Assembly (NCBI GenBank): GCA_010909165.1
Contig: MU008193.1
Location: 186,001 to 250,000, forward strand
DNA length: 64,000 nt
Source of the DNA: Anthoceros angustus
Lineage: Eukaryota > Plantae > Anthocerotophyta
Reading direction: 5' to 3'
Shown here: piece by piece, positions 32,079 to 44,334 of the stretch
Layout: each line of letters opens with the position of its first letter
Position numbering within the stretch: the first letter of the stretch is position 1
The notes under the pieces: model-generated
What the model saw: the letters and a program-made list of their open reading frames with translations, nothing else
The model's database searches: none
Told to the model about the DNA's origin: nothing
Made by a program: the position numbers and the translations under genes

Positions 32079-33153
32079 TCATTGTTCCTCCCAAATCTGG
32101 GCTGTGCCAACAAAGGCGAATAAAAAATGCCCACGTTCCTCCCGTTCTTCAGATCTCACCTATCTTTGCTCGCCAAAACAAGGCATGCTAAACCAACAGG
32201 CACTATGTAAATTGTCTACACCGGCCGGAACAGTGAAGGGTGAAGAGTGCAGAGCTAACAAATTACCCCACATTGGGCGGCTCAATGGACGGAACAACTT
32301 GTGGCAATATGATCTTGTACTCTGGTACTGAGTCCTCATTGTGTGTACAGGTTAGCCCGCGCGGTATGAGTGGACTTTTTGGAACGGGGGCCCGCAGCTA
32401 GTTGGCCCCTATCCGGGATTGAATGTTCGACAATGAGACACGGTTGACCAGGTGCCTCAATAGGTCCACAATGCGGGTGATTGCCCGCTCTCATTGGACT
32501 CTCGAGTTCCGGGGCGGCCTGATAGGTAAGCGGGCTACGCGTGGTACGCGTTTGTTTAGCTCTAACTCTAATTTTGGAGTGGAGCGCTGAAGCAAGCAGG
32601 CACCTACCCAATCATTCCTAAGCAGCATGAATCTTCGACAGGTGACACGCCTGTGCGAGGCAAAAGAAGAGTCACCCGATGCCCTGCCTCTCAGACCTCA
32701 TCGTCGACGTCTCTCACAGAGTCAAGGTTGCAGTCGAGAGACTCGAGAGGGTGGAGAGGAGGTGAATCGACACACTGGTGCCACTGGGTGCTTGGCAATG
32801 AGAAGACGCTGCGGCTGATAAGGACACTTCACGCCTTCACACCTGCCTGTGGTGGACAAAGATAACCCTGCAAAACGAATACGACCATGTTGCATATAAA
32901 GGACGGGACACTGAAGGATCGACATGGTGGGCGGAGGCCATGGCAGGCTCCCAAACATATCGACATGGTGGGCTGAGGCCATGGCAGATTCCCAAATATA
33001 TCGACATGGTGAGCGGTGTCTTGGCGCCGCACCAGGTGCCTACACTCGAATTGCAGTGCCAAACATTTTGGAGGTGTATAGTGCCACTCCAGATTCTTAG
33101 TCCACAGAAGCGGAGACACTAAGCGGTGTCCTGGCGCTACACCAGGTGCCTAC

Positions 33154-33376
33154 CACGTGTCATCTTGTTGTGCGGAATGATGGGAGCGGGAGATTTCTCG
33201 ACATGCACCAAGACACAAAAGATCACCAGGTGCATCCGCCAGTTCACAAGGGCTGCCTGCATGGAATATTCGACAACCAGTACTTCTGCAGTGGCCTCTT
33301 AGCTTGCTTGCGTCTCTTGGAACTTGGAATTGATAGAGGTGGTAAACTGCCAGTGTTACCCGACTGTGACTGCATG
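33154..33376 (+). promoter_or_regulatory. ABRE/G-box plus RY elements upstream of storage-protein gene 1
   Basis: CACGTGTC at 33154; RY (CATGCA/TGCATG) at 33202, 33258 and 33371, all within 360 bp of the ATG. Confidence 0.55.
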
Positions 33377-33507
33377 TTGATTGCATTTGCCATATCCGCC
33401 CTCTACCATCCGGGAGTACAAATGCTCCTCGTCTTGTCAGGCTCTTTCATCTCGCATTTCAGCTTGTTCCGTCTGCTACCCAGAAAATCCATCTGGAAGT
33501 GCTCACC

Positions 33508-35230
33508 ATGGGTCGCTCTTTGGCTTTAAATTTGGTCTTGGGCCTGCTGCTTGTTGGCACCTTTGCAAGCGCGGAGCGTGAGGAGCTCCAACTGGGAGAA
33601 CCCCGCAAGACACTCCAGACCAGTGGAGGACAGATTGAGGAATGGGACGTTCGGGTCCTTAGAGATGCCAATGTCGCCGAAGCCAGGATCACACTCAGGC
33701 CGCGTGGCCTGCTCCTGCCCCAGTACTCTGATTCCGCTTCCGTGGGGTATGTGGAGCAAGGTGAGTCCGACATGACAAGGTTCTGAACACCCTGACAGAA
33801 TCTTGATGATACATTTGATGAGTCGGGGATCTTCAAGGCGCAGCCGCATCTTGGTCTAATCGATGCTGCTTGAAACGCAGGAGAGGGCATTGTGGGTCTT
33901 CTGAGCGGCTACTCCTTGGGCGAGTCCTCTGCAGTCCGCCGTGTAAGGCGTGGCGATGTCGTCGCCTACCCCCGAGGAGTTGCCGGATGGTGGTACAACA
34001 GTGGCAACGAAGACCTCCGCATCCTGGGCATCGCAGACACATCTGCTTCACCGAACGGTGATTACAATGTGAGTGTTCCAGACATACCAGTAGGGAGATC
34101 ACACGACTTGCGCAGCAAATTGTGCGATTCTCGCGACTCCAAGACCGATTCTTCCTTTGCTGTGCCTGCAGGGATTCCATCTGATCGGCGGAGGAAGTGG
34201 GGAAAGCAAGAAGGGATGGCGCTGGGAACGGCATGAGCGTGAGAAACGTGGGCAGGAAGAATTCCGAGGAGTTCTCCACGGCTTCAGGAGGGAATTCTTG
34301 GCTGATGCCTGGGACCTGGACGAGAGCCGAGTGGACGAGCTGCTGGACAGCCAGAGGGGCGCTGGGATTGTGCTGGTTGAGCGTGAGATCAGGCTTCCGG
34401 AACAGGCCAACAGGGAAGAAGGCCGCAGCTTCTCTCGATCCGCCGACCGGGCCGACCCTGACCTCCGGGAGTACCTTGCGAATGGGGAATTCGTCTACAA
34501 CGTTAGGGAGGGATCTGCCGATGTGCGCGTCCGGGATGCTGGTTTCTACAACAGCGTGAACAGGTTCAAGCTGCCCATCCTCAAGGCTGTCGACCTGGGT
34601 CTCACATACGGCCGCCTCGAGAGCGTACGTTTTCACAACCCATCCATCCCCTTCAATGCTTTTTGACCGATGCTCCACAGCTCTCTGTTTAATGCTCCTC
34701 GTCTGCTGCTTGATGCATGCAGAACGCCATCGTGGCTCCCCAGTGGTCACCCACGGGACATGAAGTCGTCCACATCCTGAGGGGCAGCGCTAATCTGCAG
34801 ATCGTTAACAACAACGGGGAGCAGCTTCTGGACAGGGAAGTGAGGGAAGGCGACGCTTACGTGATTCCCCGTTTCTATGCCCACGGCGTCCAGGCCGGCG
34901 ACAAAGGCCTGGAATGGATCAGCTTCTACACCACCCACCAGTGCGTGTCTTAACAATTCGTTTTCAGATTTGATTCTGGATTGCAAAAAGCATTGCACTG
35001 ACTAATACTTGCATTTGCATTGCAGGCCTCTTGTTGAGGCTCTTGCAGGCAGAACATCCGTGCTGAGGCAGCTCCCGGAGGACGTGGCCGCTGCAGCTTT
35101 CAACATTGATATCGAGCAGGTCCGAGAAGCTAGGGAGACCCGAAGGGAGCGTGAAGCTCTGTTGCTGCCTGCTGCAGGCCGCCACCGCCAGAGGAAGGCT
35201 TCTTTCGTCAGCAGGTTCCTCAAGTTTTAA
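33508..35230 (+). CDS. 11S/legumin-like bicupin, secreted (putative spore/seed storage protein), copy 1, 438 aa
   Basis: Exons 33508-33760, 33881-34068, 34172-34624, 34723-34940, 35026-35230; all introns GT-AG; 1317 nt in frame; hydrophobic signal peptide; LLLPQYSDS..GYVEQG and APQWSP..HEVVHILRG cupin motifs. Confidence 0.92.
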
Positions 35231-37547
35231 AAAGCTATGGCGAAAGAGCAAAACGAGGCTGAGTCCCGTGGAGAAAAATGCACAGAGCGAAATCGAGTGT
35301 AGCTGCTTCTGATGACTGAAACAGAGTTCTCTTGTGATTTCAACTGAAACACAGCATCGATGCCTTCCAGCGCCAGTTCCCAAAATTAAATGAAGAATAC
35401 CACCAATTCCCAAAATTGAAGGAAGCAAAACAAGTGACTGAAGAAACATCCTTGTCACTGTACAATTCTTGGTCCTGTGATCATATGCATGCAGAGTATA
35501 GGGTGATAACCTGCCGTCAAAAACCTGGCGTGCATCTTTCAGTTCACCATATTTTGCATACATGTCCACCAGGCAGGCAGGTGCCGACCAGTGTGTCATC
35601 CAGCAGTCCTACTTAGACAATCTGTGTCTGCAGCTGCCTGCCCCCTCTGTAGGGCACCAGTGCCTCAGGCCGAAAGGAGGCCTCCCCGCTCCATTTCTCC
35701 GTACAGAACAAGTGTCTCATGTCCGAGCCCTTGGCGGGCATACCCAGCAAATCAGGGCATTTCATGTCACCACAGTTGGCCCTCTTTACTCAACAGCCTC
35801 CCAGGGCCATCCTGTACAATTGGAGGAGGCACCTCATCAGCCGTGTGTCACTGCCATACAGGCCTTACTAGTTAGGGTTGATTGGGTAGGGGCCCGCGTG
35901 CTGTCGGCCCCCGTTCCAAAATTGCGAATCAATTAAACCTGGAACATGTCGCAGTTCTTCTGGAGTGCGGCATAACCATAGGAGAGGAAAGCACTGGATT
36001 ATATTCCCACAGGTTGGTCCGTCAACTGAGCGGTCCAATGTGGGGTAATTGTTCGTTCTCCACTCTTCACTGTTCCGGCCGGTGTAGGCAGTTACATTGT
36101 GCCTGTTGTTTTAGCATGCCTTGTTTTGGCGAGCAGAGGCAGGCGATATGTGAAGAGCGGGCGGATTGAACACTTTCCCCAAGAAGCTGGCCAGAGGTCT
36201 GTCTCAACACCTGCCGTTTAAATGAAAAACCTTCTTACTTCCGGCCATGCATGCTGCTTAGAATTGATAGGGTAGGGGCGTTCGACGCATGCTTCCAGCC
36301 GCCATCCCGCCAGATCAACAAAGCCTTCACAAGGGAGTTGCCGGATCAACAATGGAAGTTTGGCCCATTCCTTAGTTAGGAAAGGTGACATTTTCCTCGA
36401 AGGGGAGGGCGTAGGGTGATACTGCCACAGCTGGCCATGTCAGTGGACGGTCCAATGTGGGATACTTGTGCACTGTCCAGTCTTCACTCTTCCAGCCTGC
36501 TAGGGGCCCTCGTGCTTCCGGCCATGCATGCTGCTTAGAATTGATAGGGTAGGGGCCTTCTATGCATGCTTCCAGCCCCAGTTCCAAAGTTGCAAAACGT
36601 AAGAAACCGAGTATACTTGCAAAGTGGCTAACCGGCCACAAATTTTACAGTATGTGACGGAAAGCAGAGCATAAGGTGATAACAATGGAGCAGTAGTGGT
36701 GTAGTGGAAGGCTGATTCGCTTCCATGTCCAGGCCCGAGTTGGATTCTCGGTTGGTGTATGTGTTGATATCATGCAAACTACATTAGTTCATTGTTGGCC
36801 CAATGTCTCGTCATTCTTGGCTCACCACTTTCCATATTCCGCCAGCGAAGGCATGGTGCGCTGCCGAAGAAGACAGAGCAAAGGCTCTGTCGCCTGCCGT
36901 GATGGCCATGTACGTTTGCCTAAGACGGTCATTACCCTACATTTTGTATGTAATCGGCCGACTACATTCTTCCGAGCCTACATTAGTACATGCTGCTTAG
37001 GCTTGACAGGGTAGGGGCCTACTTGCTTCCAAGTTCCGACCCCCGTTCCAAAAACGTGTTCACTCTGAGAGAGGATTCGGAAAATCCTCCATGCCCCTAC
37101 TGGGAGACAAGAGGTTTATATTGGCACAGCGTGTGCCATAGACTGAGCGGCCCGATGTGGGATAATTGATGGCTCTCCACTCCTCACGGTTCCCGCCAAT
37201 CTATACATTGACATGGTCCTGGCCCCTGTTCGTTTTGCATGCCTTGTTTTTTGGCGAGCAAGTTTAGGCAGATGAAGGTGTGAAGTGTCAGGCATGCAAA
37301 CGGCATATTCTTGCGTCTCTTGGGACGCTGGAACGAGTGGGATTGTGACCAGTTGAACTGGCAGTGATGCCGGAGTGGGAGCTGCAGTCCGGAATTCGCA
37401 AGGGTGTGTAGACCGCCCAATACAGATGTATCCGCACTGCTCCTGGGAGTACAAATGCGGCTACCCGCCGCTGCGTTTCTCATCCCTCGGCACTCGGTGT
37501 CTGGCGTTGTCTGGGATTGTGGATAGGAGATCTGCAGTGGTGTCGCC

Positions 37548-39634
37548 ATGGGTCGCTCTCTGTTTTGGGTGTTGGGTTTGCTCCTGGTGGCGTCCTTTGC
37601 GACAGGGGAGCGTGAGGAGCTTCGGCTGGGAGAGCCGGAGGAGGTGTTCCGCACTGATGGAGGTCGGGTCGAGCAATGGCAGCCCGATAACCGGGCTCTG
37701 AGAGATGCTAACGTTGCATCCGCCAGGGTCGTGCTCAAGCAACGTGGTCTGTTCCTGCCCAAGTACTCTGATTCTGCGGCCGTCGGGTATGTCGAAGAAG
37801 GTGAGAGGATAGCAGAAGGTGTTGGTGAATATGGGTGCTGAAGATCGTTCTTTGTTTTGTTTGATTTGAGGTCGAGCTGAAAGTTTGTCTCCTGTCGACG
37901 GCGCCCGCATGTGCAGGTGAGGGCATTCTGGGCGTTCTGAGCGGGTACGCTGAAAGCTCCAGAATCCGTCGGGTGAGGCGCGGCGATGTCGTTGCCTTAC
38001 CTCGGGGAGTAGCTTCATGGTGGTACAACAGCGGCAATGAGGAGCTCCGCATCCTCGGCTTCGCCGACACATCTGCATCAGAGAACGGGGAGTACAATGT
38101 AAGCGCTTGCTTGTGGTGTGGAGCGACATCCATGTTTTGGGCACGGGTGCACATGGGTTTGCAAATTTTGGTGGGTGCCGAGTTCGGTATCCGAATGTGT
38201 ATGTTCGCTGCGCAGGCGTTCTATCTGGCCGGTGGAGGACGAGGTGAAGGCAGGAGGAGGCTGAACCGAGGGAAAGGCGGCGAGCGCCGGGAACGGGAAC
38301 GGGAGGAACGCGAGCGCCGGGAACGGGAACGGGAGGAACGCGAGCGCCGGGAACGGGAACGGGAGGAACGCGAGCGCCGGGAACGGGAGGAGCGCGAGCG
38401 CCGGGAACGGGAGGAGCGCGAGCGCCGGGAACGGGAGGAACGCGAGCGCCAGGAACGGGAGGGGGACGAGAACGGAGGAGAACGTAAGGAACGTGAGAAA
38501 CGCGAGCGTGAGGAACGCGAGCGACGCGAACGGGAGGAGCGGGAACGAGAACGGGAGCGTGAGCGCGAACGGGAACGGGAGGAGCGTGAGCGGGAACGGC
38601 GGCGAAGGGAGCGTGAAGATCGCAAGCACGGAGGGCACGGACGGGAGCAGGAGGAGGAGTACGGCTCGATTCTCCAAGGTTTCAGGAGAGAGTTTTTAGC
38701 TGAGGCCTGGGATCTGGACGAGGCCAGAGTGGACGAGCTGCTGGACAGCCAGAGGGGCTCGGCTATCGTCTTGGTTGATCGTGAAATCAGGGTGCCCGAG
38801 TTCGAGCAGGAGGAGGAGTTGAACAGGGAGGAGGGTCGTAGCATCTCCCGATCCGCCGAGAGGGCCGATGCTCATCTCCGCGAGTACCTGGCCAGCGGAG
38901 AGTTTGTGTTCAACGTTCGCGAGGGATCTGCTGATGTGCGCGTCCGCGATGCTGGTTTCTACAACAGCGTCAACAGGTTCAAGCTGCCCATCCTCAGGGC
39001 TCTCGACTTGGGTCTCACTTACGGCCGTCTGGAGAACGTATGTTACGTTTTTTCCAGATCTTTTATGGTTTCTGCAGATTTTGCATGCAGTTGTGATTAC
39101 TCACGAATCCGAATTGGGGTTTCTGCAGAATGCAATTCTGGCTCCTCAGTGGTCGCCCACGGGACATGAGGTGGTGCATATCTTGAGGGGTAGTGGCAAC
39201 TTGCAGGTGGTGAGTCACAATGGGGAGCAGCTTGTGGATAGGGAAGTGCGGGAAGGTGAAGCGTATGTGATTCCCCGTTTCCATGCCCACGGCGTTCAGG
39301 CTGGCAACGAAGGCTTGGAGTGGATCAGCTTCTACACCACCGACCAGTGAGTGTTCCTGCCTGCTTTTTAGCTTTGCTCTGCTGGTGTCTGTCTGCTTGG
39401 AACTTGTCTTGTTTATTTGCCGGACATCGCATGTGCAGGCCCCTCGTGGAAGCTCTTGCAGGCAGGACCTCCGTGCTGAGGAGGCTTCCGGAGGAAGTGG
39501 CAGCAGCAGCCTTCAACATCGATGTTGCTCAGGTGCGCGAAGCAAGAGAGACTCGGAGGGCTGAGGAGCCGCTTCTGCTGCCAGCTGGAAAGAGCCACCG
39601 CGAGAGGAAGCATCCCTTCCTCGCCACCTTCTGA
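37548..39634 (+). CDS. 11S/legumin-like bicupin, secreted, copy 2 with Arg/Glu repeat insertion, 556 aa
   Basis: Exons 37548-37800, 37917-38098, 38216-39037, 39129-39346, 39439-39634; introns GT-AG at the same positions as copy 1; 1671 nt in frame. Confidence 0.92.
38281..38630 (+). repeat. Coding minisatellite (Arg/Glu-rich)
   Basis: Three perfect 30-mers CGAGCGCCGGGAACGGGAACGGGAGGAACG (38281-38370), three 24-mers (38371-38442), then degenerate ER codons. Confidence 0.95.
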
Positions 39635-40847
39635 AAAGCTGCAGAAACGTGTTTCAACTTGTCTAAGTGCAGATCAGTGCTCCACCTTGTAGTAGGAATT
39701 GCCAAGCAAGTCTTACAAGGGTGGGAAGGACAATTTTGTTAGTGCCAGTCAGCAGCGAGGGGGGTTCCTCTGTTTCGCTAAGAGGATGTTAGCCTTTCCA
39801 TGTAAATAGACTACTTTTGCGTTAAGTACTAAGACGAAGTTTCCTTTCAGCACCTCCAAAGCGTTGTCATCTTTGTACCCCCCTAATGTGTCGACAGACA
39901 GACAGACTCCTTACACTTTGAGCCCCCCCCTTATCGATCGACAGGCATATCCCTTTGTCAGTATTCTTGTCTCATTTAGTAGGATTTGTGCCTCTCGGAT
40001 GATTTGTGAAGGCTGTATTGATTAGACTGTTTTTCAGTAGTACTGACCAAACTGCTGGTTTGTAGAGGCTTTGCTGCTAACAAATCAACAGAATGACGGA
40101 GACTTGAGACAGCCTGGAGTTGCCTCACAAAACGCCTCACAAAGCTTGAGAGAACTCTAGAACCTCTCACCAAACATCCTTTTTTGTTAATGACAACATG
40201 TAAGTCATGACGAAGTAGAAAACACGCATTTAGCTGTTCCGCACGTTGTCAAAAAGATGGGTTTGTGACGACTTGCAGATGCACCAATTCGACCTCCAGA
40301 GTCCAGATTCTCGATCCACATGCTGGGCCGATACACAAAGCGGTGCCTTTGCGCCGCACCCAGTGCCTACATTCGATTTGCAGAGCGAATATAGTACAAA
40401 CATTCTGGAGATCACTAGTACAGTGCCTCTCCAGATTCTCAGTTCACACACGGCGAGAAACTGATAAGCGTGTCCTGGCGCCACACCAGATGCCTACGAG
40501 GTGTCATCTTGTTTGTGCGGAGTAATCGGAGGCGGGGATTTCTCCAAATGCATCGAGACACAAAATTTCACCAGGTGCATGCATCCACGACCTCGCAAGG
40601 GCTGCCTGTACGGGATATTCGACAACCAGTACTTCTGGAGTGGCCTCTTAGCTTGCGTCTGTTGGAACTTGGAACAGAGGCGGTAAACTGCCAGTGTTAC
40701 CCAAGAGTGACTGCATGTTGATTGCATTTGCCATATCCGCCCCTGCCATCCAGTAGTACAAATGCTGCTCGCCTCGTCTGGCTCTCTCATCTAGCATTTC
40801 AGCTTGTTCCCTCTGGTACCCACAACATCCATCTGGAAGTGGTCACC

Positions 40848-42566
40848 ATGGGTCGCTCTTTGGCTTTATTCTTGGGCCTGCTGCTTGTGGCATCCTTCGC
40901 CAGCGCCCACGGTGAGGAGCTCCAACTCGGAGAGCCCCGTGAGACCCTGCGGACCAATGGAGGACAGATCGAGGAATGGGACGTTCGGGTTCTGAGAGAT
41001 GCCAACGTCGCAGAAGCCAGGATCATTCTCAGGCCGCGTGGCCTGCTCCTGCCCCAGTACTCTGATTCCGCTTCCGTAGGGTATGTTGAGCAAGGTGAGT
41101 CTGACATGACAAGATTCTGGACATCCTGTCCAAATCCGATGAAACACATTTGATCAGGCCGGATGTGCAATGCGCAGCAGCATGTGGGATTAAGCGATGC
41201 TGCTTGAAACGCAGGAGAGGGCATTGTGGGTCTTTTGAGCGGCTACTCCTTGGGCGAGTCCTCTGCAGTCCGCCGTGTGAGGCGTGGCGATGTCGTTGTC
41301 TTCCCCCGAGGAGTTGCCGGATGGTGGTACAACAGTGGCAACGAAGACCTCCGCACCCTGTGGATCTCAGACACATCTGCTTCACCGAACGGTGATTACC
41401 ATGTAAGTGTTCCAGACGTACCAGTAAAGAGATCTTACGCCTTGCGCAGCAAATTGTGCAATTCTCACGACTCCAAGACGGGTTCTTCCATTGCTGTGCC
41501 TGCAGCCATTCGATCTGATCGGCGGAGGAAGCGGGGAAAGCAGGAGGGAACGGCGCCGGGAACGGGAATATGAGCGTGAGGAACGTGGGCAGGAGGAATT
41601 CAGAGGAGTCCTCCACGGCTTCAGGAGGGAATTCCTGGCTGATGCCTGGGACCTGGACGAGAGCCGAGTGGACGAGCTGCTGGACAGCCAGAGGGGCGCT
41701 GGGATTGTGCTGGTTGAGCGTGAGATCAGGCTTCCGGAACAGGCCAACTGGGAAGAAGGCCGCAGCTTCTCTCGATCCGCCGACCGGGCCGACCCTGACC
41801 TCCGGGAGTACCTTGCGAATGGGGAATTCGTCTACAACGTTAGGAGGGATCTGCCGATGTGCGCGTCCGGGATGCTGGTTTCTACAACAGCGTGAACAGG
41901 TTCAAGCTGCCCATCCTCAAGGCTGTCGACCTGGGTCTCACATACGGCCGCCTCGAGAGCGTACGTTTTCACAACCCACCCATCCCCTTCAATGCTTTTT
42001 GACCGATGCTCCACAGCGCTCTGTTTAATGCTCCTCGTCTGCTGTTTGATGCATGCAGAACGCCATCGTGGCTCCCCAGTGGTCACCCACGGGACATGAA
42101 GTCGTCCACATCCTGAGGGGCAGCGCTAATCTGCAAATCGTTAACAACAACGGGGAGCAGCTTCTGGACAGGGAAGTGAGGGAAGGTGACGCCTATGTGG
42201 TTCCCCGTTTCTATGCCCACGGCGTCCAGGCCGGCGACGAAGGCCTGGAATGGATCAGCTTCTACACCACCCACCAGTGCGTGTCCTAACAATTCGTTTT
42301 CAGATTTGATTCTGGCTTGCAAAAAGCATTGCACTGACTACTACTTGCATTTGCATTGCAGGCCTCTTGTTGAGGCTCTTGCAGGCAGAACATCCGTGCT
42401 GAGGCAGCTCCCGGAGGACGTGGCCGCTGCAGCTTTCAACATTGATATCGAGCAGGTCCGAGAAGCTAGGGAAACCCGAAGGGAGCGTGAAGCTCTGTTG
42501 CTGCCTGCTGCAGGCCGCCACCGCCAGAGGAAGGCTTCTGTCGCCAGCAGGTTCCTCAAGTTTTAA
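40848..42566 (+). CDS. 11S/legumin-like bicupin, secreted, copy 3 (recent duplicate of copy 1; one-base frameshift as assembled)
   Basis: Exons 40848-41094, 41215-41402, 41506-41960, 42059-42276, 42362-42566; total 1313 nt, one short of frame; AGGGAGG in copy 1 is AGGAGG at 41842-41847. Confidence 0.85.
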
Positions 42567-44334
42567 AGAGCTATGGGGAAATAGCAAAGCGAGTCTGAGT
42601 CCCGTAGAGAAAAATGCACAGAGCGAGATCGAGTGTAGCTGCTTCTGATGACTGAAACAGAGTTCTCTTGTGATTTCAACTGAAACACAGCATCGATGCC
42701 TTCCAGCCCCAGTTCCCAAAATTGAATGAAGAATATCACCAGTTCCCAAAATTGAAGGAAGCAAAACAAGTGACTGAAGAAACATCCTTGTCACTGTACA
42801 ATTCTTGGTCCTGTGATCATATGCATGCAGAGTATAGGGTGATAACCTGCCGTCAAAAACCCGGCGTGCATCTTTCAGATCACCATATTTTGCATACATG
42901 TCCACCAGGCAGGCAGGTGTCGACCAGTGTGTCATCCAGCAGTCCTACTTCGACAATCTGTGTCTGCAGCTGCCTGCCCCTCTGTAGGGCACCAGTGCCT
43001 CAGGCCGAAAGGAGGCCTCCCCGCTCCATTTCTCCGTACAGAACAAGTGTCTCATGTCCGAGCCCTTGGCGGGCATACCCAGCAAATCAGGGCATTTCAT
43101 GTCACCACAGTTGGCCCTCTTTACTCAACAGCCCCCAGGGCCATGCTGTACAGCTGGAGGAGGCACCTCATCGGCCGTGTCTCACTGCCATACAAGCAAT
43201 GCTAGTTAGGGTTGATTGGGTAGGGGCCCGCATACTGTCGGCCCCCGTTCCAAAATTAAGTGTTGATTAAGCATTGGACATGTCGCAGCTCTTCTAGAGT
43301 GCGGCATAATCCGTGGAGAGGAAAGCACTGGATTATATTCCCACAGGTTGGTCCGTCACCTGAGCGGCCCAATGTGGGGTAATTGTTCGTTCTCCACTCT
43401 TCACTGTTCCGGCCGGTGTAGACATTTACATTGTGCCTGTTGTTTTAGCATGCCTTGTTTTGGCGAGCAGAGGCAGGCGATATGTGAAGAGCGTGCGGAT
43501 TGAACACTTTCCCCAAGAAGCGGGCCAGAGGTCTGTCTCAACACTTGCCGTGTGCCGGCAACTCAAGTTGCCCAATGTGGGGGGATGGCTTTTGCTCGAC
43601 ATCCACTGCTTCGTCCTGTGTAGGACAACGTTCCTGTCCGTTCTTGGAGACCTTGTGGAGTCTTGTCGGCTGCCCAAAGACAAAATGAGGAGCAACCAAG
43701 AGCCGAGCATACAGTGTAGAGACATACCAGCCAGCGGCAGGAGATTGAATGAAGCAGATCTAGATCAAATAAAATTCTTCTTCTTCTTCTTGATGTACCA
43801 ATTCAGATGCCATGGCCTCTGCGTATCCTCTCTACGCTCTCTTGAAGTTCAGGCGAGTACTTCAATTCCTCTTCAAGTACAGCAGCATAGGAAGTTTTCA
43901 TTGTGGCCGCATGTTGGTGGGGATTGGGGGGGATTGATGGTACCTTGGGAGGAATTCGAGAAACATCTTGTGGAAGCTGCAGCTCACCAAATCAGTGTGC
44001 CCGTGGAAGAGAACGGATAGTGGGGTTCAGGCACCACATCAATGTAAGGTAAGCCCGCACTGCTCGACCAGCCCACCCAGGTAGCCCGGTGTCTTGGCGC
44101 CGCGCCAGATGCCTGCAGGCCACTTGTGATACGGAATCCGAAGCACATGTGGAGATGGGCAAGCCCCCGCAGGAACCAGGGGCATGCACTAGTACTGCTT
44201 ACTACTCGCAAGGCTCGCTTGCATGCATATGCGATCTTCTTAAAACACTCCACCGCAGTCCGACTCTGTTTAAGACTGGAATGGGTGCGGCAAACTTGTT
44301 GAGGTTATGGCGATTAGAGCCCTGATTAGGGCAC

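Follow-up and report, generated by a model that had tools for sequence, protein, structure and literature searches.

The window, that is, the whole 64,000-nt stretch of Anthoceros angustus DNA that was analysed, contains three tandem bicupin genes, all on the + strand and each made up of five exons and four introns with GT-AG splice sites, which were read directly. A fourth copy was not found in the window using tblastn. Gene 1 (33508..35230, +; exons 33508-33760, 33881-34068, 34172-34624, 34723-34940 and 35026-35230; intron phases 1, 0, 0, 2) is intact based on its splice sites, reading frame and lack of internal stops, with 438 codons plus stop. Gene 2 (37548..39634, +; exons 37548-37800, 37917-38098, 38216-39037, 39129-39346 and 39439-39634) is likewise intact, with 556 codons plus stop, as judged from the sequence, tblastn and dN/dS. 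Gene 3 (40848..42566, +; exons 40848-41094, 41215-41402, 41506-41960, 42059-42276 and 42362-42566) is broken as assembled. Exon 3 carries a 1-nt deletion (GGG to GG, 41843..41844, +), seen in the alignment, in the reading frames and as a tblastn frame change at 41844; the surrounding stretch is otherwise identical to gene 1, and a premature stop follows 17 codons past the lost G. A preliminary description of this locus had listed three tandem paralogs with four introns, a set of core motifs and the C-terminal tails ASFVSRFLKF, HPFLATF and ASVASRFLKF. All of these are found in the sequence, but only two of the three copies are intact.

The Cupin_1 domain of Pfam is found in both halves of all three copies; in gene 1 it matches exons 1, 2 and 4, and weakly exon 5. 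Copies 1 and 3 arose by a recent duplication (a 3.1-kb unit, 92.6% identical). Copy 2 is the divergent one, with 64-86% amino-acid identity per exon (tblastn). Between genes 1 and 2, dN/dS is 0.17 at a dS of 0.89; these are therefore selected genes and not chance ORFs, and purifying selection acts on the genes of the window. The trio multiplied locally by tandem duplication, with gene conversion probably involved.

Concerning the upstream regions, that of gene 1 (33108..33507, +) holds candidate elements only, among them CATGCA cores at -306, -250 and -137. The 320 nt upstream show a modest enrichment of such cores, not all of which are kept between copies. Genes 1 and 2 have the upstream blocks CTTGCGTCTCTTGG, AACTGSCAGTG and GAGTACAAATGC in common. 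The full RY 8-mer CATGCATG is confined to a region some 1.0-1.3 kb upstream of gene 2, and ACGTGKC shows no concentration around the promoters of the trio.

Predicted protein features

The N-terminus of gene 1 (33508..33573, +) encodes a predicted signal peptide, MGRSLALNLVLGLLLVGTFASA, followed by EREEL; its maximum 10-residue Kyte-Doolittle mean is 2.73, and an A-x-A site precedes the acidic mature start. Signal peptides were assigned here by this hydropathy heuristic together with the A-x-A site, and not by SignalP. All copies have a hydrophobic h-region and ASA or ATG, then EREEL (genes 1 and 2) or HGEEL (gene 3). At the other end, gene 1 has a C-terminal extension of 19 residues past the conserved LLP/FPP motif, ending in SRFLKF (35171..35227, +); the extension of gene 2 past this type of motif is 16 residues long.

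The composition of the two intact proteins is unusual. Both contain no cysteine, and methionine is found at the start only. Arginine accounts for 11.5% of the residues in gene 1 and 18.8% in gene 2, which also has 19.0% glutamate, and the number of nitrogen atoms per residue is 1.49 and 1.68, respectively. Exon 3 of gene 2 contains an in-frame, GC-rich tandem repeat with periods of 24, 30 and 60 nt (38280..38616, +; TRF). In translation, the repeat makes up most of a Glu/Arg-rich insert of about 130 residues, which the alignment places in the loop that holds the variable Gln/Glu-rich region in 11S globulins. The earlier proposal that the locus encodes secreted, storage-type globulins is thus borne out in part: these are predicted secretory-pathway bicupins of storage-like composition, with a tail that is absent from the signal-less legumin-like proteins discussed below.

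Relationship to 11S globulins and legumin-like proteins

We compared the genes with angiosperm 11S globulins, with other predicted secreted bicupins, and with the signal-less legumin-like (LL) proteins of the At1g07750/At2g28680 type, which include the maize 'legumin-like protein'. The highest summed exon scores, 244-293 bits, were obtained with the top-scoring secreted bicupins from streptophyte algae, a liverwort, lycophytes and a fern. Against angiosperm 11S globulins they were 179-244 bits (two outliers excluded), and against LL proteins 186-229 bits. The nearest full-length relatives are from Psilotum, Selaginella, Diphasiastrum, Calypogeia, Chara, Spirogloea and Closterium. A word-based protein search with exon 3 of gene 2 as the query matched one fragment, and when an alignment of 16 relatives served as the query, angiosperm 11S proteins made up most of the hits among the 8000 scored candidates sharing most words.

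Among solved structures, the best relatives are 11S globulins, which match exon 4 at 6e-17 in the PDB search; conglutin beta is the only 7S-type match to this exon, with an E value of 0.55. Exon 4 also has matches of about 1e-6 to bacterial oxalate decarboxylases, which would agree with active cupin enzymes of the oxalate decarboxylase or oxidase type. The 11S matches are better by ten orders of magnitude, and the His pair of the His-x-His metal motif is replaced by Trp and Pro in exon 4 (read by eye at an ungapped offset), while the equivalent stretch of exon 1 reads Q-Y-S (also by eye). We therefore give hardly any credence to an enzymatic role, as far as it can be judged from these residues.

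The preliminary description had held the core of these proteins to be much closer to LL proteins than to 11S globulins, and had proposed that an LL scaffold acquired a signal peptide and a sorting tail and so opened an independent path to storage globulins. Exons 1-3 do score slightly better against LL than against 11S proteins, and the AWDLDE and YSDS motifs are common to LL; exon 4 scores best against 11S. Taken together, similarity to the two groups is about equal, and the key motifs reach beyond LL: AWDLDE and YSDS are also found in the secreted members of algae, liverwort, lycophytes and fern, where the former takes the form AWD[LV]DE, and LAGRTS is present in an 11S protein too. Judging from this distribution, AWD[LV]DE and LAGRTSV are shared ancestral characters.

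Intron positions, mapped by exact spliced matching onto alignment columns, are informative in the same respect. The columns and phases 138/1, 263/0, 474/0 and 548/2 are identical in genes 1 and 2, Calypogeia, Selaginella and Diphasiastrum. Introns 1-3 are kept in the 11S gene of Vaccinium and are shared by Chara. The one LL gene examined, that of Raphanus, has introns 1 and 4 only (columns 138 and 548), so that introns 2 and 3, common to the window genes, 11S and the non-seed group, are absent from it.

For phylogenetic placement, we computed the likelihood of attachment to every branch, entering each of the five exon peptides as its own row instead of a single joined protein. The trees were unrooted, and their reference set was without gymnosperm or fern 11S proteins and without a 7S outgroup. 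The exon peptides were placed on backbone branches, on the 11S stem or on the Calypogeia branch, and never within the 11S or LL crowns. The best branch shifts between the two reference alignments and backbone support is low; constrained placements of single exons were scattered, again with low support. In the reference trees, the secreted non-seed members form a grade without clade support, and LL proteins group apart, in a clade that has strong support and includes a lycophyte member. The likelihood weight of the LL stem was 0.01 and 0.0001 with one reference tree and about 0.001 with the second, and placement within the LL clade was 48-49 lnL units below the optimum. Predicted signal peptides are present in relatives from Chara and Zygnematophyceae, whereas LL proteins were traced no further than the lycophyte in this sample. 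An origin from an LL scaffold is therefore very improbable. Because secreted relatives with signal peptides are found in these algae, the reverse direction is favoured, with the secreted form more probably old and LL derived; the signal peptide and the C-terminal tail look ancestral.

The genes might also be ordinary 11S legumins of a seed-free plant, forming hexamers of cleaved acidic and basic chains linked by disulfides. The PDB matches, the top score of exon 4 and the shared introns 1-3 speak for this, and on one reference tree the 11S stem ranked first or second among the placements. The residues on which such an architecture depends are different. Columns 78, 113, 159 and 422 hold Cys in 7/7 11S proteins, and in genes 1/2 they hold A/-, D/D, G/- and L/A; columns 415-416 are NG in 7/7 11S proteins, DP in gene 1 and AH in gene 2. 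The only Asn-Gly of gene 1 lies about 7 residues downstream of the 11S site and is Ser-Gly in gene 2. A single uncleaved chain without a disulfide is already implied, because there is no cysteine in the sequence. Placement within the angiosperm 11S crown was 88 lnL units below the optimum. The earlier view that these proteins lie outside the canonical 11S globulins is upheld, and it is highly unlikely that they are 11S legumins of the ordinary kind.

Based on these comparisons, the trio belongs to an old streptophyte family of predicted secretory-pathway bicupins, which are about 390-450 residues long and run from a signal peptide through two Cupin_1 barrels, separated by a variable loop, to a C-terminal extension. 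The family is an unresolved backbone which gave rise to two derived long branches, the 11S globulins of seed plants and the signal-less LL proteins.

A candidate nitrogen reserve

The account that we favour, and consider fairly probable, is that these members of the old secreted bicupin family, with a tail that possibly serves in sorting, accumulate as a nitrogen reserve. The proteins would enter the ER, and the extension, with its hydrophobic end (FLKF, LATF) and basic residues, may direct them to the vacuole as a C-terminal sorting determinant recognised by VSR-type receptors. Binding by VSR1 requires a free C-terminus with hydrophobic last residues and favours basic over acidic residues, and C-terminal vacuolar sorting determinants have no consensus (PMC8740768). 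Over the family, the tail ends are hydrophobic in part only. The nitrogen reserve that the proteins would then build up, uncleaved, free of disulfides and of sulphur and rich in arginine, would be deposited in a dormant or desiccating stage; as a guess, spores are the most obvious such stage. In gene 2, the Glu/Arg repeat would supply extra nitrogen within an insertion-tolerant loop. The proposed storage role fits the composition of the predicted proteins.

A different function is suggested by Zhang et al. (2020), who report 31 bicupins in Anthoceros angustus, many of them in tandem, and propose drought adaptation for the expansion (PMC7027989). The genes would then encode secreted or vacuolar stress proteins of vegetative tissue, acting in desiccation, defence or the cell wall. 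The presence of the family in algae that have no spores of the land-plant type is also in line with such a role. On compositional grounds, the zero count of internal sulphur residues, the high arginine content and the rapidly expanding Glu/Arg loop repeat would fit a bulk nitrogen store better than a specific activity, and we regard the stress function as an unlikely but serious alternative.

If the reserve is a spore reserve, ER entry, tail-dependent vacuolar sorting and the bulk deposition of nitrogen would be older than seeds, and a pre-seed storage-globulin system would be open to study in a bryophyte. A wider version of this account, which we put forward tentatively and hold to be possible at best, takes the secreted, tailed and Cys-free bicupin as the state of globulins before seeds, serving as a vacuolar reserve in the spores or zygospores of streptophytes. 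From this state, 11S globulins would have gained disulfides and the Asn-Gly site and lost intron 4, and the cytosolic LL proteins would have lost the signal peptide, the tail, the linker and introns 2-3. Its direction is the reverse of that in the preliminary description. The comparison offers a simple, testable account linking 11S globulins and the uncharacterised cytosolic LL proteins to one older secreted family, and this account rests on differential intron loss and on the loss of the signal peptide and tail.

Comparison with known systems

The window genes share with 11S globulins the bicupin fold, a signal peptide, introns 1-3, a variable acidic inter-barrel loop, and a composition low in sulphur and high in Arg/Glx. 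In the 11S globulin cruciferin, the C-terminal region is a sorting determinant, to which the C-terminal region of the window genes can be likened. Apart from the cysteine and Asn-Gly columns, they differ from 11S globulins in having AW for AF in the helix motif and in retaining the fourth intron.

With LL proteins they share the AWDLDE, YSDS and LAG(R/K)TSV motifs, the absence of the 11S cysteines, and introns 1 and 4. LL proteins differ in having neither signal peptide, tail nor introns 2 and 3, and their inter-barrel linker is shortened. A hydrophobic N-terminus is found in none of eight LL proteins, which end 1-3 residues after FFPP, compared with a signal-peptide-like N-terminus in 12/17 non-seed members and 7/7 11S proteins (hydropathy).

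The closest kin are the secreted bicupins of seed-free plants, namely Selaginella moellendorffii XP_002988902.1 ('legumin A'), Diphasiastrum KAJ7298410.1 and Calypogeia fissa CAM6089674.1, and, among algae, Chara braunii GBG87027.1 and Closterium GJP56185.1. These have in common with the window genes a signal peptide, two Cupin_1 barrels, a length of 390-450 aa without inserts, AWD[VL]xE, LAG(R/K)(T/N)S and an extension past (F/L)PP. The window genes also show the absence of the 11S cysteines and the NG site that characterises this group. Identity to these kin, whose functions are at most predicted, is 40-50%; the window genes are set apart by the absence of Cys and of internal Met, and gene 2 also by its repeat.

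The arrays described by Zhang et al. (2020) likewise consist of tandemly duplicated Cupin_1 bicupin genes (PMC7027989). In the text consulted, the genes are counted and placed in a tree, and signal peptides, tails, cysteine loss, intron structure and the relation to LL proteins are not described. The trio adds another tandem bicupin cluster to a lineage from which such clusters have been reported, and is not a new kind of system.

The tandem cluster and its duplication history

The preliminary description of three tandem genes stands; they lie on the plus strand, and the N-termini and C-terminal tails quoted there are exact in the sequence; gene 3, however, is frameshifted as assembled and carries a premature stop. 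Gene 1 (exons 33508-33760, 33881-34068, 34172-34624, 34723-34940 and 35026-35230), modelled on splice sites and frame, has 438 codons with no internal stops, and its introns are all GT-AG, in phases 1, 0, 0 and 2. Gene 2 (exons 37548-37800, 37917-38098, 38216-39037, 39129-39346 and 39439-39634) has 556 codons. In exon 3 of gene 3 (exons 40848-41094, 41215-41402, 41506-41960, 42059-42276 and 42362-42566) a GGG run is short of one G (41843-41844), with a stop after 17 codons in the assembly. The surrounding stretch is in all other respects 100% identical to gene 1, which leaves two readings for the missing G: a mutation or inactivation of very recent date, or an error in the assembly of a homopolymer. 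The Pfam domain Cupin_1 is matched by exons 1 and 2 in the first barrel, and by exon 4 and, weakly, exon 5 in the second. No fourth copy was found in the 64-kb window by tblastn with the exon peptides of gene 1. The cluster is a real, mostly intact tandem set of predicted secreted legumin-like bicupins.

Genes 1 and 3 lie inside a duplicated unit of 3.1 kb (33076-36217 and 40418-43551; 92.6% identical). Along this unit, identity rises from 84% upstream and 88% in exon 1 to 96-100% from the middle of exon 3 onward, the last stretch taking in introns and 600 nt of downstream flank; such a gradient is suggestive of gene conversion in the 3' half. The older paralogue is gene 2 (dS 0.89 and dN/dS 0.17 against gene 1). 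On the minus strand just 3' of genes 1 and 3, ORFs of 211 aa with a PPR-like start (LVDMYAKYGELKDARQVFD) are found at 34964-35599 and 42300-42935; these are probably the relic of a PPR gene, brought along within the duplicated unit.

Relatives and position among plant bicupins

The exons were searched individually, as separate queries. The solved structures nearest to exons 3 and 4 all belong to 11S globulins (9.6e-07 and 6e-17, respectively); oxalate decarboxylases of bacteria follow at a wide distance, and a 7S protein has an E of 0.55. A word search gave one fragment only, and an exhaustive HMMER search with exon 3 of gene 1 was therefore used: it returned 56 matches, headed by gene fragments on Logan contigs. 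Outside the window, no relative was found closer than a five-exon homologue on a 5-kb contig (L001:2843-4583, Logan SRR33208241), whose exons are each 54-67% identical to those of gene 1. Among full-length proteins, the nearest are bicupins of 390-450 residues from Psilotum nudum, Selaginella moellendorffii (named 'legumin A' by NCBI) and Diphasiastrum complanatum, and further from the liverwort Calypogeia fissa, Chara braunii, Spirogloea muscicola and Closterium; most contain a hydrophobic, signal-like N-terminal segment. Four of the Calypogeia proteins (CAM6100286, CAM6100287, CAM6100297 and CAM6100304) are near-identical copies from one contig with adjoining accession numbers, and local multiplication of the family may not be confined to hornworts. 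The comparison set also took in the signal-less, At1g07750-type legumin-like (LL) proteins and further 11S globulins.

The genes had been described as much closer to the LL proteins than to 11S globulins, which the scores do not bear out: the BLASTP bits summed over the five exons are 186-229 against LL proteins and 179-244 against angiosperm 11S proteins (two low-scoring outliers left out). Against the best nine or ten secreted proteins of non-seed plants and streptophyte algae (the non-seed group) they are 235-293. Looking at each exon separately, exons 1-3 lean slightly toward LL and exon 4 toward 11S.

A maximum-likelihood tree was built from 31-32 full-length proteins. In it the secreted proteins of the non-seed group form a grade with poor resolution, out of which 11S and LL emerge as two long branches with full support. 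For placement, the exon peptides of each gene were attached, as five separate rows, to every branch and the likelihoods compared. On the first reference tree the 11S stem is the best position for gene 1 (weight 0.63) and the Calypogeia branch that for gene 2 (0.70; 11S stem 0.29), the LL stem receiving 0.01 and 0.0001, respectively. In the second, for which a signal-less Diphasiastrum protein was added and the set re-aligned, the best likelihoods of both genes fall on a branch deep in the backbone, and gene 2 has a second position on the 11S stem (0.38). The best branches thus differ between the two trees, and placement of the genes on the backbone is not fixed. Nesting in either crown is rejected on these data, from an unrooted tree whose reference set contains neither gymnosperm nor fern 11S proteins nor a 7S outgroup: in the second tree, attachment within the LL crown is 48 and within the 11S crown 88 lnL units worse. 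The nesting within 11S that the preliminary description had set against its own proposal did not occur. That proposal, a secreted derivative of the cytosolic LL scaffold, is itself strongly disfavoured by these placements, the LL stem having a weight of about 0.001 in the second tree.

The added protein (KAJ7290849.1) is a bicupin of 367 aa that lacks a signal peptide, ends in FFPPSRS and is sister to the angiosperm At1g07750-type proteins with 100/100 support; its grouping with LL places the origin of the signal-less lineage no later than that of the vascular plants. The LL lineage and putatively secreted paralogues coexist in one species, Diphasiastrum complanatum.

Distribution of motifs, introns and termini

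AWD[LV]DE, previously taken as an LL-like mark, is present as well in secreted members from algae, liverwort, lycophytes and fern (11S proteins show AF there), and LAGRTS is found in an 11S protein too; both are shared old characters. All seven 11S proteins have cysteine at four columns of the alignment and Asn-Gly at a further pair, whereas genes 1 and 2, the LL proteins and the non-seed group have other residues there. An Asn-Gly of gene 1 lies about seven residues downstream of the 11S site, where gene 2 has Ser-Gly.

Concerning the introns, seven relatives were mapped in spliced form, by exact matching, onto their genomic loci; the four introns of the window genes are at the same columns and in the same phases as those of Calypogeia, Selaginella and Diphasiastrum. 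Introns 1-3 are shared with the Chara gene. A Vaccinium 11S gene keeps introns 1-3 of the four, whereas a Raphanus LL gene keeps 1 and 4. The match between hornwort, liverwort and lycophytes argues that the four-intron gene is the common land-plant state, and that 11S and LL lost different introns; fourth-intron loss in angiosperm legumin genes was reportedly described in older literature by Häger and co-workers.

A signal-like N-terminus is found in 7/7 11S proteins, 12 of the 17 non-seed proteins (five lack one, perhaps as truncated models) and none of the eight LL proteins. Past FFPP, all eight LL proteins have a further 1-3 residues; the corresponding extension is 16-19 residues in the window genes and 0-65 in the non-seed proteins. 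Since signal peptide and tail occur together, their joint loss in LL proteins is the simplest reading. Both the 11S globulins and the LL proteins seem to descend from the secreted, tailed form with four introns, and this polarity is the more interesting by-product of the analysis.

Upstream regions and fit to a proposed storage role

In the upstream regions compared on the plus strand (33108-33507, 37148-37547 and 40448-40847 for genes 1, 2 and 3), two to three CATGCA cores lie within 320 nt 5' of each gene; the whole window has 1.08 per kb. Genes 1 and 2 have cores at similar distances (-306/-250 and -312/-255), and the cores are only partially conserved between copies. The window scan showed no concentration of the full RY 8-mer or of ABRE-type motifs at the three regions. 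Short blocks common to the diverged paralogues are CTTGCGTCTCTTGG, AACTGSCAGTG and, about 90 nt 5' of the ATG, GAGTACAAATGC.

Zhang et al. 2020 (PMC7027989) give 31 bicupin genes for Anthoceros angustus, more than in any other plant examined there, mostly in two species-specific clades and thirteen of them in tandem, and suggest a link with drought tolerance. Judged by sequence, the window genes are an addition to the known, little-studied family of secreted legumin-like bicupins and not an LL-scaffold derivative.

The storage and vacuolar-sorting parts of the earlier proposal are reasonable hypotheses for these genes. The mature proteins of genes 1 and 2 contain no cysteine or methionine; gene 1 has 11.5% Arg and 1.49 nitrogen atoms per residue, and gene 2 18.8% Arg, 19.0% Glu and 1.68 nitrogen atoms per residue. 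FLKF and LATF form the ends of the tails, with basic residues before them. In the crystal structure of VSR1 with the cruciferin tail, the receptor grips the free carboxyl end and prefers hydrophobic last positions; basic tail residues are favoured over acidic ones, and a consensus sequence does not exist (PMC8740768). Composition, tails and the repeat of gene 2 would fit a vacuolar nitrogen reserve. This repeat, an in-frame, GC-rich tandem array with a period of 24-60 nt, accounts for the additional residues of gene 2 and occupies the inter-barrel loop, which in 11S proteins holds the variable Gln/Glu-rich region.
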